From Hyaloraphidium curvatum SAG 235-1 (Eukaryota > Fungi > Monoblepharomycota), in contig JAIVFI010000002.1 of assembly GCA_025558095.1 (NCBI GenBank), positions 744,001 through 808,000 on the forward strand: a stretch of 64,000 bases of DNA. Reading direction: 5' to 3'. The notes beneath the pieces are model-generated. The model worked only from the letters and a program-made list of their open reading frames with translations. It was not told the origin of the DNA and ran no database searches. Numbering within the stretch: the first letter of the stretch is position 1; each line of letters starts with the position of its first letter. The position numbers and the translations under genes were made by a program. Positions 39,222-44,848 of this stretch are shown piece after piece.

Positions 39222-40112
39222 ATGTCGCTTTTGCCTCTTGCAGACTACGGAGACGACGAGGAGGACGAGGAAGTTCCGCAGCCGAGCTCGCACGCGGTGC
39301 TGGAGCGTGTGCTGCAAGAAACGCGCCCCCCCGGGTTCTCCCCATCGACCCCGTCCCGCGATTCGAAACCCGCCCGTCCCGCCACGAACCTCGTCAAGCT
39401 CCGTAGCAACGGCGGCAGCCGTGCCGGCACACCGAGTTTTGAAAACGCCCACACACCTTCGGCGCCCTCGGAACCCTCGCCGCGCCGCGATGCCGACGAA
39501 GACGCGGATGAATCACGGATCGCTCCCGCGGACGGAACGGGACCGCCAAATCCCGTGACGAGGAGGAATGAGATCTTGGCGCCGAAGAACAAGGACCGCC
39601 TCGTGTTGCCGCCCGAACCGGAAGGCGCGGTGGACCCCCAGTTGCAGGCGAGCGGCGCGCGGGCATTCTGCGCTCGCCGGGTCACTGAAGCTCGACCATC
39701 GAATGCAGGCCAAAATGGAGAAGTGGACGCAGCTGAAGCGGGAAGGAACGTCCTTCAACAAGGCTCTGATGAACAACAAGGCCTTCCGGAATCCGTCCAT
39801 CATGAACAAGCTCATCGAGTTCTTGGACCTCGACCAGTTCGGGTCCAACTTCCCTCCAGATTCCTTTGATCCCCGTGGGTTTGGCCCTGAATCCTTCCTG
39901 GAGGAGCTTAGTGGGTGTGCTCCGCTTGCCAGCGCCGGAACGGTCGTTGATCCGAAGCAGCAAAAGCACAGAACCAGCGATCCGAGCAGCGGACACTTCC
40001 GGGAGGGGCGCCATCTGGACCATCTGGGCCTTTGTCGCGGCAAATTGCCTTCCAATCCAACGGGGAGCAGAGCACGGTCGGAAGGCAAAGCAAGTGGGAC
40101 AAGCAGGGGTGA
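39222..40112 (+). CDS. SAP30BP: HCNGP/SAP30-binding protein
   Basis: LADYG, LPPEPEG..LQAK, FRNPSIMNKLIEFLDLDQFGSNFP..FDP, SKWD. Confidence 0.88.
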
Positions 40113-40194
40113 AAAGAACCTCTTCTAGCTGGCATCGCTGTGACTCTACATTGGTGCGCGAACGGACACTCTACCGCGCGGTGGAGTTAAGGTC

Positions 40195-43100
40195 TCACTT
40201 CACCACGGCGCTGCGGAGGCTCGCCGCCTTCACGGGCCCCTTGCTTCCGACCGTCAAGGGGAGACCGCGCCACACGACCGTCAGGTCATCGGTCGTAGTA
40301 ATGTCGGGCTGAATCGTCTCGAAGACCTTCTTCTTCGGATTCAGCTGCTCCTCGGGTTCGCCTGTTTGAGTTTCGTCAACGCGGACCTTTCAAGAGCCTC
40401 GAAATCGCCTACCTTGCTGTCCGGCAACGGATACACGGTCGCCCGGTTGGCTGCCCTCGGGCGGAATGAGAAGCTCCACCTTCGTGTGATCCGCGTCGGA
40501 GGCTGCCAGCACCATCGCGGCACTCTTGATCCCCCGCATTGATGCCGGCTTCAAATTCGTCAGCAGGACGCACAGCTTGCCCTCCAGATCACTCGGTTGA
40601 AGGTACTTGACCAGGCCCGAAACCACTGTTCGCGGACCCGAACTCTCGTTCAAGTCAACGGTTTCCACGTAGAGCGTATCCGCATCCGGGTGTCGCTTTA
40701 CGTCCAGGATACGCCCGACTCTGATGTCGAGCTTCGAGAAGAGCGACACGTCTGTGGGATACGTCAGCGAATCTTTCTTGGCGTTGCGATCGAGGAACTC
40801 GCCTGGCGCGTCCGACGATACGGCGGTTGCCGGCACTTCTTGAACGGATGGCGTACCGTTCGCCGGCTTGGATGTAGGCGAGGGAGTCGGAAGGGTCTCG
40901 CTGCCGGCGCCGGCGCCGAGATCAGATCCGTAGACGGAGTCCATCTTGTACATCCGGCTCTGGCTCGGAGGCAATGGTATCTCGGTCATGACGGGTTCGA
41001 GCCGGTACATGGACCCGTGTGGCGGAAAGGGTTCCTGGTGCGGCGACGGAGTCTGCTGAGCGGGTTTCGGAGCCGGCGCAGGAGAACCAGCTGCTCCATG
41101 GGCTTTGGGCGCGACGGGTTTCGATTCGGCCCTGCTAGAGTCGGCTGCGCTCTTGCTCGCCACCGTCTTGCTGCTGCCATCCGGGATCAAGATCATGCGG
41201 ATGGGGGAACTGGGAGACGACGGATCGTGCGGTCGGTCGCAAATGTAGTAGCCCTTGCGTTCGAACTGAATGATGTCTCCATGTCGCAGTTGCGTGACGT
41301 TCCTGTCTCCGACAGCGTCGATCTCCAGACGCGGACCGTTGAGTTTGCTGGAGCATGCAGGCGCGGCATGGGCGAGTATTCACCTTGAATTCGGTCACAG
41401 GGGTGAGGAAGTTCTGGACTTCTTCGTCTTCTTCCAGCTTCTTCTTCGTGATCAAGTAGTCGTAGTCCAGCAGCTCCAAAGCGGGCAGGTCGGCCTGCAA
41501 CCCTGCAGCCGGCACGCGCGAGATCCAGGTCAGCTTCCGCTTGGTCTTTTTGAAGTCGCCCTCGAGGTTCAGCTTGACCGTTATGCACTGCACGGTCCCT
41601 TCGGGCGCGCGGATCACGTCCTGAATGATGACGTTTCCCCAGTCCATCAGGGTAACCTCTTCGCCAGGTACGCTGTCCTTGGCATCGGCCTGCTCGAGCC
41701 ACAGCTGATTTGAGCACACGGTAGTCTTGACGCCGACGTCCGGGTTCTTCTTATGCTTGGGGATTTCCTTCGTGTAGGGCTCAAGTGCCTCGCCCACGAC
41801 ATCCACGGGAACCCTGGTTACGGGCCTGTCAGTCAAGGAACCCCGGAAGGCCAGACCGGGTCCCACAAATCCTTCGACTCCAGAGCGGTGAAACGTGGAG
41901 CGACCGGATCGATGACCTTCTTGTTGGTCGCCCAGATCTTGTCCCATTCGAGATCAAGGACCTTTTGCGACGCCCCTTGCGACAGGATGTAGCTCCGAAG
42001 GGCCTCGATGGTCATGCCGCGACGGCGGATGCCCCGGATGGTCGGGAAGCGGGGGTCGTCCCAACCGCTCACGTGGCCCTCCTCGACGAACCACTTGAGC
42101 TTCCTCTTGGACAGCAACGTGTAGATGAAGTTGACTCGCGAGTAGTCGAAGATGAAGACCTTGCGAATCTTGAGGGCATCGAAGAACCAGTTGTACTGCG
42201 GGTTGCGATCCCTGTACTCGTTGGCACGCAGCGCGTGCGTGATGCCCTCCAAGGAGTCCACGACTGGTGCGGCAAAGTCGTAGGTAGGGTAGATCTTCCA
42301 CTTCGTCCCGGTAATGTGGTGCGGGACCTCCACGTTGCACCGATAGATGACCGGATCGCGCATCGCCTTGTTCGGATTGTCGACCGAGATCTTGGCCCGC
42401 AGGGCGCACGTCAGGCCCTAAGAGGGACGGTGAGTTGGCGAGCAAAGCCCCGGAACACGACCTCACAAACTCCGTTCCCTGCCGCATTTCCTCGAATCTG
42501 CTCCTGTTCTCCTCCACAGAGAGATCCCGGCACTTGCTCTTGATGCCCTCTCCGCGCTCGTACCGCATGGTCTCCATGTCAGTGTTGTCGACATACGCCA
42601 GGCCGAGGTCAATCAGCTCGATGGCCTTTTCGTAGAGGGCGTCGAAATAATCGGACGTGTGTGTCGTCTTGTCGGCAACGATGCCCATGAGCTCAAGGTC
42701 CTCCTTGATGGACTGCTCAAACTCCATCTACGTGGCGGTACCTAATGTCGGCCTGTGGGCGGGGAGCACCCAAGAAAGCCTACCTTCTCCTTGCTCGGGT
42801 TGGTATCATCGAAGCGCACGTAAAACTTCCCCTTGTAGCGCTTCGCAATGTAATCGCTGACGAGAACGGCCTTGGCATGGCCGATGTGGAGGTATCCCGA
42901 GGGCTCCGGGGCAAAGCGCGTCACCACCTTGCCCTCCTCCGCAAAGGGCACATCGATGGAATACTCCTGGGCCTCCGCCGTAGAAGGTGCCTCTTTGCTG
43001 TCCTTTTTTCCATCCTTCGCCGCGGGGGCCTCCTTTGCTTTGGCGGTCTCCGGCAGCGCCGCGGCTTGAGTGGCCGGCAGCGAGGCCACTTGCTGGTACC

Positions 43101-43533
43101 AACGCACGAGCTCTTCCAGACCACCCTTGTTGACCTTCAAGTTCTTCTGAAACACGGGACTTCCTGGCGACGCCAAAGATAGTCAGGACCAGGGGTAGCA
43201 GACACTGCGCAGGGCCCCGTCACCTCGCAGGGCAGCCCATACTGCGAAATCCGCTGCGCTGGGGCCGTATCCAACGAGATACGACCGCATTGCAAGATGC
43301 AATTCCAGCTCCGCAAATCCAGAGGCCACCTTTCGGCCGTCATCGCTGGCCAGGACGTCTTTCGCGAAAGCGATCCAGCGGTCCAAATTTGCGCCCTCCC
43401 CGGCAGGGAACACGTCCGGATGTCCCCGGAAGGCAGCGAGGTCCGTAGAAGCATCCTTTACGCCCGCATTCGGACCGTCAGCTCCCGGCGATGCCCGCAC
43501 GTGGTGGTACGCGATGCGAGCGGCGAGCTCCAT
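40195..43533 (-). CDS. GUS1: Cytosolic glutamyl-tRNA synthetase with N-terminal GST-like domain and C-terminal Arc1p/EMAP-II-like tRNA-binding domain
   Basis: [66 protein letters not shown], then in-frame [35 protein letters not shown]. Confidence 0.95.
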
Positions 43534-43638
43534 TTTGTTTGTTCTCCCCACCCTCCCGGTGGCGATCGTCCAGTCAGTCAGAAGCAGCCTGTTTTCGTCA
43601 CGGAGCGTACAATCACATTCGAAGCCGGTATAACTACA

Positions 43639-44848
43639 TCATTCGTTCGCCTTACGGCCTCGGCCCGATCCGCTGGCCGCCTCCTTCCTTCCAGGCGGCC
43701 GGGGAGGCTTCGATGCCTTCGCAGGCCCTTTCGTGCCCGGCTTGCCCTTGCCTTCCTTTCGCTTTTCGATGTTCTCGGCCTTGGTTTTGGCCGCTTGCTT
43801 AGCCAGCTTCTTTTGGCCGTCCAAACGTTCCGCCCACGCCTTTGCCGATCGCTTCTTCTCCGCAGATGCCCGCTTGAGGCTCTTTTTCAAGAGCTGGACA
43901 TCGTCCGTTAACTTCGCACCCAGGGCCTTCTTTTCCGCCCTCGCCCAAGAGAGCTTCTCGGCTGCGGCCCGGGCTTCCTCCGGATCCGATTTGGAGATCT
44001 CGGCCAGATGCTGCTTCCGTTTCTGGGCTTTGGCCAGGAGAACCTTCGCGTCCTTCTTCTTCTTCTTCGGCTGGTCGGCCATGTGCTGAGCGCCCTCGAT
44101 CTTCCCGAAACTGAAGTCGTCGACGGAACCGCCGGGCCGCGGCTTCGCGGCCTCTCTAGGTCTGTCCCGCTGGGCCAAAGATCCCGATGCGACCTTTGAG
44201 GCGCCGCTCGATTGTACCGCAGAGCCCGCGGAGCGGCTCCCGCCGGATTTCCCCTTGTCCTTCTTGCCCCGCGCCTTTTCCTTGGCGCGGCGCTCCAAAA
44301 TCTCCTCTTTGGACCTGACGAGCCCCGCAGGGGACTCTTCTCGCGCGCCTCGCTTGCTCCGCAGCTCGCTGATCTTTTGCTGAAGCCGAGCGTGGAGCTC
44401 TGATGCCGTCGCCGGCCGGGCACCATTCAGCGGGACAACAGACGAGCTCAGCCCCGGTACTGCGGAGGCAGCATCGTGAGCTACGTCCGCACCGGCGGGC
44501 TTGGCAAGTCCGTTATTGAGCGCTGGAGGCGGGGCATCGGGATCCAGCTGAACCTGGCGGTGAGAAACCACGTCGCCACTGGTGGCATTCCGAGTCCCAC
44601 CTTGGCTCTCTTGGCTAATTTTGCCAAATCTTTCTTGCTCTGTGCGCGCTTGCGCTTGTTCTTGCCGTACTTTCCTCCCCCGGCGTCCCCATCGCCGTCG
44701 ACGCTGAGGTAGTGCTTCGAGGGGATCATCTCCACGAGCGCGGAGAACGCCGCTTCGTGGGCGAGCAGCCGAGACTGTCAACATCACTGTAGTGAGAACA
44801 GGCCACCGGAGCCTTGTCCCGGCCGCCGCAGACCTTGAGTTCCGCCAT
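43639..44848 (-). CDS. RRP14: Ribosome biogenesis protein Rrp14/SURF6
   Basis: LKSRLLAHEAAFSALVEMIPSKHY, LHARLQQKISELR, FSFGK, W..A..GAKLTDDVQLLKKSLKR..KKRS..W.ER. Confidence 0.9.

Follow-up and report, generated by a model that had tools for sequence, protein, structure and literature searches.

A glutamyl-tRNA synthetase with a C-terminal EMAPII-like tRNA-binding domain in the fungus Hyaloraphidium curvatum

Introduction

The addition of EMAPII-like tRNA-binding domains to aminoacyl-tRNA synthetases is a textbook example of domain accretion, and glutamyl-tRNA synthetase (GluRS) is one of the two enzymes served in trans by such a domain on the yeast protein Arc1p. The present analysis concerns a GluRS gene of Hyaloraphidium curvatum SAG 235-1 (Monoblepharomycota) in which a domain of this type is encoded in cis. 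It is a single minus-strand gene at positions 43533..40195 of a 64,000-nt stretch of assembly GCA_025558095.1 (contig JAIVFI010000002.1, positions 744,001 to 808,000; hereafter the window, to which positions refer unless another contig is named). The encoded protein comprises, in this order, a helical N-domain resembling the C-terminal part of glutathione S-transferase (GST), a class Ic synthetase core, two anticodon-binding domains, a linker and an EMAPII-like domain.

In PMC11286949, Arc1p acting in trans is described as lowering the Michaelis constant (Km) of both yeast GluRS and yeast methionyl-tRNA synthetase (MetRS), and a cofactor effect in cis, also with a lower Km, is described for plant MetRS and for engineered MetRS-Arc1p fusions. 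The oligonucleotide-binding (OB) fold of this class catches tRNA by its single-stranded 3'-CA end (PMC11286949). The direct OB fusions listed in that review are those of MetRS, PheRS, TyrRS and Entamoeba enzymes, with no GluRS among them, and GluRS is treated only as a partner of p43/Arc1p-type proteins in PMC4394549 and PMC10813123.

Compared with the yeast Arc1p-GluRS-MetRS complex, the Hyaloraphidium protein combines the same type of enzyme (class Ic GluRS with a putative GST-like N-domain) with the same module (EMAPII-like OB fold and pseudo-dimer extension), and the Arc1p pocket residues are conserved. However, the module is covalently bound to GluRS in chytrids, whereas yeast Arc1p is supplied in trans; moreover, the connector in Hyaloraphidium is a P/S/A-rich linker with two short motifs, called MY motifs here, instead of the basic middle domain of Arc1p, and an Arc1p-like protein is present besides. 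Plant and nematode MetRS likewise carry an EMAPII-like domain in cis at the C-terminus of a class I synthetase (Kaminska et al. 2000, as cited in PMC11286949), but the host here is GluRS, and the plant MetRS domains group apart from the chytrid GluRS domains in a tree of OB domains. Human and other metazoan TyrRS have the same type of domain at the same position of a class I synthetase, as does the TyrRS of Hyaloraphidium itself; the MY-motif linker is found only in the GluRS version. The best structural-sequence match is human AIMP1/p43 (pro-EMAP II; 4R3Z, 1EUJ, 1E7Z, 1FL0), over the whole EMAP II domain and its C-terminal extension, although AIMP1, which has a helical N-terminus, serves as a scaffold and not as an enzyme, and its cytokine role is not expected in a chytrid GluRS. 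Finally, in metazoan EPRS (GluRS-WHEP-ProRS) the C-terminus of GluRS is also extended, by way of a flexible linker, with RNA-binding and other modules, but these are WHEP repeats and ProRS rather than EMAPII; in Hyaloraphidium, WHEP is located on MetRS.

Gene structure and transcript evidence

The reading frame of GluRS continues beyond its normal C-terminus (MILIPDG) into a complete OB fold. Indeed, 303 codons are open on the minus strand from 41322 to 40414, and in Pfam searches this one exon holds both the end of tRNA-synt_1c_C2 (E=3.5e-06) and a full-length tRNA_bind domain (1-96/96, E=4.5e-28). The course of the frame is as described in an earlier note on this DNA, except that the exon starts at 41322 and not at 41330. 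The note had also stated that no intron was needed, which is true of the frame but not of the mRNA, from which a GC-AG intron (40802..40752) in the linker, just ahead of the OB fold, is removed. This intron corresponds to 17 codons, in frame and free of stop codons, so that the note could read straight through it. Frame translation and the RNA contig together give a spliced coding sequence (CDS) of 985 codons, against 1002 if the GC-AG intron were retained; the 17 codons are also missing from the NCBI model P0191 (985 aa, 'tRNA synthetases class I, catalytic domain-containing protein [Hyaloraphidium curvatum]'), which is identical to the exon translations. The exons were searched singly against Pfam, and the full-length steps used P0191.

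This stretch is represented in only one public run, which is available in the form of assembled contigs and is guessed to be RNA. The GluRS contig (2979 nt; run X1, record 2), placed on positions 39800-43800, extends from 40181 to beyond 43223; judged by its length, its other end lies at about 43527, which misses the start codon by six bases. It lacks all six predicted GT-AG introns, precisely removed, which makes it unlike a contig of genomic DNA, and it lacks a seventh stretch of 51 nt (40802..40752). The joint of the latter (40751/40803, CT..GC on the plus strand) has a 3-nt ambiguity, and GC..AG is the sole canonical register of the four. With seven introns spliced out, the contig thus runs through GluRS and the linker into the OB fold, in agreement with the cis fusion of GST-like, GluRS and EMAPII-like parts in a single frame that the note had proposed, and it contains the predicted joint of the last GT-AG intron (40412..40362), which leads to the stop codon at 40197-40195. 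It gives no proof of expression level or of transcript ends. The features of the gene, all on the minus strand, are as follows:

43224..43533, minus strand: exon 1, with the start codon at 43533 and the start of the helical GST-C-like N-domain (P0191 residues 1-104)
43164..43223, minus strand: intron 1, 60 nt, GT-AG (RNA joint 43162/43223)
42784..43163, minus strand: exon 2, end of the N-domain, acidic/lysine spacer and start of the catalytic domain with HIGH (tRNA-synt_1c 1-49, E=9.6e-22)
42728..42783, minus strand: intron 2, 56 nt, GT-AG (RNA joint 42727/42784)
42467..42727, minus strand: exon 3, catalytic domain (tRNA-synt_1c 51-138, E=1.5e-17)
42418..42466, minus strand: intron 3, 49 nt, GT-AG (RNA joint 42416/42466)
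41867..42417, minus strand: exon 4, remaining catalytic domain with the LSKRK loop at the KMSKS position (tRNA-synt_1c 143-313, E=2.4e-54)
41814..41866, minus strand: intron 4, 53 nt, GT-AG (RNA joint 41812/41866)
41384..41813, minus strand: exon 5, anticodon-binding domain 1 (tRNA-synt_1c_C, E=2.7e-17)
41323..41383, minus strand: intron 5, 61 nt, GT-AG (RNA joint 41322/41384)
40803..41322, minus strand: exon 6a, end of anticodon-binding domain 2 (normal GluRS C-terminus; tRNA-synt_1c_C2 42-69), then the disordered P/S/A-rich linker
40984..41010, minus strand: linker motif 1, SMYRLEPVM (M749-Y750 invariant in 39 fusion proteins)
40927..40953, minus strand: linker motif 2, MYKMDSVYG (M768-Y769 invariant, Y775 nearly invariant)
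40752..40802, minus strand: intron 6, 51 nt, GC-AG (RNA joint 40751/40803)
40413..40751, minus strand: exon 6b, OB fold of the EMAPII-like domain (PF01588 1-96/96, E=4.5e-28)
40362..40412, minus strand: intron 7, 51 nt, GT-AG (RNA joint 40360/40412; in-frame stop if retained)
40195..40361, minus strand: exon 7, C-terminal 'pseudo-dimer' extension and stop codon (aligned with 1EUJ residues 108-163)

The end of the GluRS contig at 40181 lies 14 nt past the stop codon, and the contig of a convergent plus-strand neighbour ends at about 40164-40170; the 3' ends of both genes thus nearly touch or overlap. Several contigs with unlike sequence are present at 40125-40170.

Identity of the synthetase body

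A HMMER search with the long exon among 1.84 billion representatives yielded full-length and fragmentary proteins with GluRS anticodon domains and tRNA_bind, the top match being a hypothetical protein of Chytridiales sp. JEL 0842; P0191 was found by a word search seeded with the tail of that protein. In P0191, the tRNA-synt_1c profile (PF00749) is covered from 1 to 313 over exons 2-4 (E down to 2.4e-54), the HIGH motif is present, and 39 orthologues show hardly any variation in the LSKRK loop (L419-L424). Both beta-barrel anticodon-binding domains are matched (PF03950, E=2.7e-17; PF20974 tail, E=3.5e-06) and are also precomputed on P0191. The N-domain gives a GST_C_2 match (E=0.002) whose 18.6 bits lie under the Pfam cut-off of 24.9, and the N-domains of orthologues give weak matches to GST_C and Arc1p_N_like. 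In an AlphaFold2 (AF2) model built from a 39-protein alignment, it consists of six helices at residues 47-148, while residues 1-45 are of low confidence and no strands are present.

The fused protein is, on its domain content, a eukaryote-type class Ic GluRS with predicted activity rather than the paralogous glutaminyl-tRNA synthetase (GlnRS), because the GlnRS-specific R2 region is located at a separate locus (C3), the bacterial-type Anticodon_2 domain at another (C21), and the nearest named relatives are annotated as glutamate--tRNA ligase. These two, a GlnRS (C3) and a bacterial-type GluRS (C21), are the remaining tRNA-synt_1c loci of the genome. The bacterial-type GluRS is presumably mitochondrial, and the fused gene is the only cytosolic-type GluRS of the genome.

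The EMAPII-like domain

The terminal 160 residues match human EMAP II structures end to end (1EUJ, 1E7Z and 1FL0, E ~1e-46). Indeed, P0191 residues 823-982 align with residues 7-163 of the 166 of 1EUJ (human EMAP II/AIMP1), and the tail also aligns with the C-domain of human TyrRS (1NTG, 2e-40) and with yeast Arc1p (4R1J, 1.5e-36); judged by these values, the match is far above chance level. The 1EUJ alignment covers the C-terminal extension (~60 aa) through 'LNPKKK' to the end of the protein, and this extension is confidently folded in the AF2 model, in which confidence is high for the synthetase core and over residues 820-985 and the OB fold has a predicted local distance difference test (pLDDT) value of ~93. 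In monomeric EMAPII-like proteins, the C-terminal extension mimics the dimer interface of Trbp111 (pseudo-dimer). Since the alignment includes this extension, the tail is a complete EMAPII-like domain and not a bare OB fold.

The 3'-CA pocket of Arc1p is formed by D226, S227, K269, V271, M273, R274, S278 and M281 (PMC11286949). At a constant offset of 616, that is by spacing and without structural superposition, these residues correspond to D842, T843, K885, A887, M889, R890, S894 and M897 of the Hyaloraphidium protein. Among 39 fusion proteins, D842 and K885 are invariant, and conservation is 90% or higher at M889, R890, S894 and M897.

In pairwise comparisons, the OB fold of GluRS shares 58% identity with the copy on the TyrRS of the same genome and 56% with the Arc1p-like copy. 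In the OB-domain tree, only 13 of 101 branches are well supported, too few to choose between the TyrRS and the Arc1p-like copy as the source of the tail. In the same tree, the EMAPII-like domains of Chytridiales TyrRS nest among the chytrid GluRS domains (P0189, P0190 and P0192-P0195 versus P0160-P0171) with weak support, and they share up to 78% identity with a GluRS tail; the TyrRS domain of Hyaloraphidium is placed elsewhere. Domain replacement or gene conversion between both synthetase genes may have produced this nesting.

The linker and the tandem MY motifs

The linker that joins the two parts is ~125 aa long, and in the AF2 model its residues 705-818 have a pLDDT of ~30 and are docked on nothing. 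In Hyaloraphidium, P, S, A and T together make up 54% of it, and its net charge is -1. In most chytrid orthologues, by comparison, the linker is lysine-rich, with a net charge of +2 to +18, which recalls the basic middle domain of Arc1p.

Two tandem motifs, 19 residues apart and with the consensus M-Y-x-[V/S/L]-[K/E/D]-[P/S]-[V/I]-Y, are present within the linker. M749, Y750, M768 and Y769 are invariant in 39 of 39 fusion proteins and Y756 and Y775 are nearly invariant, while the surrounding linker is variable. In a pattern scan, 44 of 48 GluRS fusions had the MY motif upstream of their OB fold, but it was present in none of the stand-alone (0/129), MetRS-linked (0/82) and TyrRS-linked (0/10) EMAPII proteins retrieved. 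Intramolecular docking of the motifs was not seen in the full-length AF2 model. They resemble a short linear motif specific to the fusions; the tandem invariant MY motifs are a new element of the present analysis.

Other tRNA_bind genes and the Arc1p-like protein

A profile search of the contigs of the 31.9-Mb assembly revealed four tRNA_bind loci:

Window 43533..40195, minus strand: the fused GluRS, Pfam tRNA_bind
Locus L001: TyrRS with a C-terminal EMAPII-like domain
Locus L003: stand-alone Arc1p-like gene, annotated as P0375 (425 aa)
Locus L004, contig 5, 1486-1866, minus strand: 126-aa open reading frame (ORF), bacterial CsaA/Trbp111-like, tRNA_bind 3.3e-12

The Arc1p-like protein P0375 is intact and consists of a GST-like N-domain (Arc1p_N_like), a K/A/E-rich middle and an EMAPII-like domain encoded by two exons. 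An Arc1p-like protein and a fused GluRS are also encoded together in other chytrids, namely in Gorgonomyces (P0185 and P0066) and, as partial entries, in Rhizoclosmatium hyalinum and Irineochytrium. The presence of an intact P0375 indicates that the fused GluRS has not displaced an Arc1p-like scaffold. The fused chain is itself a synthetase, not a non-catalytic scaffold of the Arc1p/AIMP1 type; in this genome that scaffold is P0375. A complex prediction of P0191 1-178 with P0375 1-178 scored 0.81, against 0.71 for one unrelated control, and is not used as evidence.

The architecture of MetRS, which the earlier note had suggested checking, was also determined. The cytosolic MetRS (L016:1402-2487, plus strand, and L015; contig 26) begins with a GST-like N-extension, ends in a WHEP-TRS domain (E=9.8e-12) and lacks a tRNA_bind domain, a layout that is metazoan-like rather than yeast-like.

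Distribution and origin of the fusion

The combination of PF00749, PF03950, PF20974 and PF01588 is precomputed on the GluRS of at least 30 named chytrid species of many genera, including Batrachochytrium dendrobatidis, B. salamandrivorans, Spizellomyces, Powellomyces, Rhizophlyctis, Rhizoclosmatium, Chytriomyces, Nowakowskiella, Polychytrium and Gorgonomyces. Outside the chytrids, protist transcriptomes of EukProt and MMETSP and metagenomes also contain this architecture, there lacking the MY motifs, and fused proteins occur as transcriptome ORFs marked 'type:complete'. An ESM Atlas cluster with this architecture has 224 members, diatoms being the commonest known phylum, which is a lead only. 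The architecture that the earlier note had considered novel was thus already public in these chytrid orthologues and protists; a paper describing a GluRS-EMAPII fusion was not found in a full-text literature search, which had most subscription journals outside its scope.

In a tree of the GluRS core, all 33 fusions of the chytrid type fall into a single clade (SH-aLRT 99), and the adjoining clade consists of plain GluRS, including the one named yeast entry, Wickerhamomyces. Three changes of fusion state are needed on this tree, of which well-supported branches force only one, so that one origin and several origins both fit the tree. A rather speculative and improbable reading is that the chytrid GluRS-EMAPII with MY motifs represents an early fungal state with built-in tRNA capture, that Dikarya later lost the module and relied on Arc1p in trans, and that the MY motifs are an unrecognised docking motif by which the tail is anchored either on some partner within the multi-synthetase complex or on tRNA. 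It would be compatible with the fused chytrid clade adjoining the plain Dikarya clade, with the fused forms of separate protist groups and with the well-supported branches, which leave room for a single origin.

Other arrangements were encountered in the same material. On a Tara Oceans metagenome scaffold (L019:977-5243) and in P0011 and P0151-P0156, ORFs of 1155-1263 aa encode a complete GluRS followed by a complete MetRS. The tRNA_bind domain follows this fusion in the same ORF or in the next call, with seven cluster members in ENA, JGI and Logan assemblies. Such a GluRS-MetRS-tRNA_bind chain would unite the three functional components that make up the yeast Arc1p-GluRS-MetRS complex; no paper on the GluRS-MetRS fusion was found in the same literature search. 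In a marine protist GluRS (P0285, MMETSP/JGI, 860 aa), WHEP-TRS and a C-terminal tRNA_bind domain are precomputed by Pfam. Two further entries, P0159 (Phlyctochytrium bullatum, 1234 aa), with a tetraspanin domain ahead of the GluRS fusion, and P0064 (391 aa), with Ribosomal_L17 ahead of a GST_C and tRNA_bind protein, are probably merged gene models.

Proposed function and alternative explanations

In the reading that we favour, with a probability of roughly 0.8, the appended domain of the single cytosolic GluRS acts in cis as a general tRNA-capturing cofactor, which adds to the Arc1p-like scaffold and does not replace it. The OB fold of the flexible tail would bind tRNA, with modest affinity, at its single-stranded 3'-CA end, raise the local concentration of tRNA and hand tRNA-Glu to the anticodon-binding and catalytic domains of the synthetase body, by which the Km for tRNA-Glu would be lowered. 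By analogy with work on Arc1p, plant MetRS and Trbp111, this cofactor role is the most likely one, because Arc1p in trans, plant MetRS and the engineered MetRS-Arc1p fusions provide precedents; the conserved pocket residues add support.

Several points weigh on the other side. The RNA basis is an assembled contig of guessed RNA status, which is no proof that one molecule spans the gene and leaves room for a start site within it, and the run may be the data behind the public gene model, in which case contig and model are not independent. Furthermore, robust tRNA binding by Arc1p and AIMP1 requires a basic region beside the OB fold (PMC11286949), and such an accessory region adjoining the OB fold was not found in the Hyaloraphidium linker (net charge -1). 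Since this linker is non-basic, the OB fold alone may bind tRNA weakly, and the linker speaks against strong binding by the tail alone; the synthetase body may stand in for the basic accessory region.

The conservation of the MY motifs raises the question of whether the tail is mainly a docking or regulatory device, with the motifs binding a partner (the GST-like domain of the Arc1p-like protein or of MetRS, EF-1, or the synthetase body) and the EMAPII-like domain retaining or routing tRNA, for example in the cytoplasm. Their invariance within a variable, disordered linker and their restriction to GluRS fusions (44/48 versus none elsewhere) would fit such a role, as would the localisation roles of Arc1p, including a proposed cytoplasmic holding of tRNA, reviewed in PMC11286949. 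However, no partner is known, AF2 docks neither motif on the same chain, and the conservation of the 3'-CA-binding residues fits a direct role in tRNA binding, so that we regard a mainly docking tail as unlikely, though worth retaining. The earlier note had considered that the chain could be both enzyme and scaffold, so that no separate Arc1p would be needed. One chain does contain a putative GST-like N-domain together with an Arc1p-C-like domain, and the MetRS of the genome has no tRNA_bind domain of its own, but the search for a stand-alone Arc1p that the note had called for found the intact P0375 with its Arc1p_N_like, lysine-rich middle and EMAPII-like parts. Other chytrids with a fused GluRS also retain an Arc1p-like protein, and the GST-like N-extension of the cytosolic MetRS would still need a partner. 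The proposal is thereby largely refuted and is very unlikely.

Human AIMP1 is cut by caspase-7, which releases an EMAP II-like signalling fragment, and the long, exposed and disordered linker of the chytrid GluRS, together with the strong similarity of its tail to human EMAP II, could suggest a similar release. That the tail is cleaved off as a signal is nevertheless highly improbable in a unicellular or filamentous chytrid, where cytokine biology is not known; evidence for a cleavage site was not found, and the conservation of the tRNA pocket points to tRNA binding. Assembled contigs can also bridge overlapping transcripts, and a GluRS gene and a small neighbouring EMAPII gene could in principle have been merged into one model. 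Between the two parts, however, there is neither a stop codon nor intergenic space, the intron in the linker is spliced in frame, the linker motifs are conserved across the junction, and the architecture is continuous in at least 30 species and in complete transcriptome ORFs; an artefact of this kind is therefore scarcely credible. The preferred reading thus remains that of a tRNA-capturing cofactor in cis beside an Arc1p-like scaffold.

Significance

GluRS is apparently a new host for a well-known cis-appended EMAPII-like domain, conserved across the fungal phylum Chytridiomycota, already catalogued and seemingly without a published description. The practical weight of the finding is limited because the gene is already annotated and its likely function follows from known relatives. 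The tandem MY motifs are a small, concrete puzzle that is open to testing. Since Arc1p serves yeast GluRS in trans, a phylum-wide cis version of GluRS beside an Arc1p-like protein provides a ready-made comparison of what the OB fold contributes in cis and in trans, and of the rewiring that multi-synthetase complexes underwent from early-diverging fungi to Dikarya.

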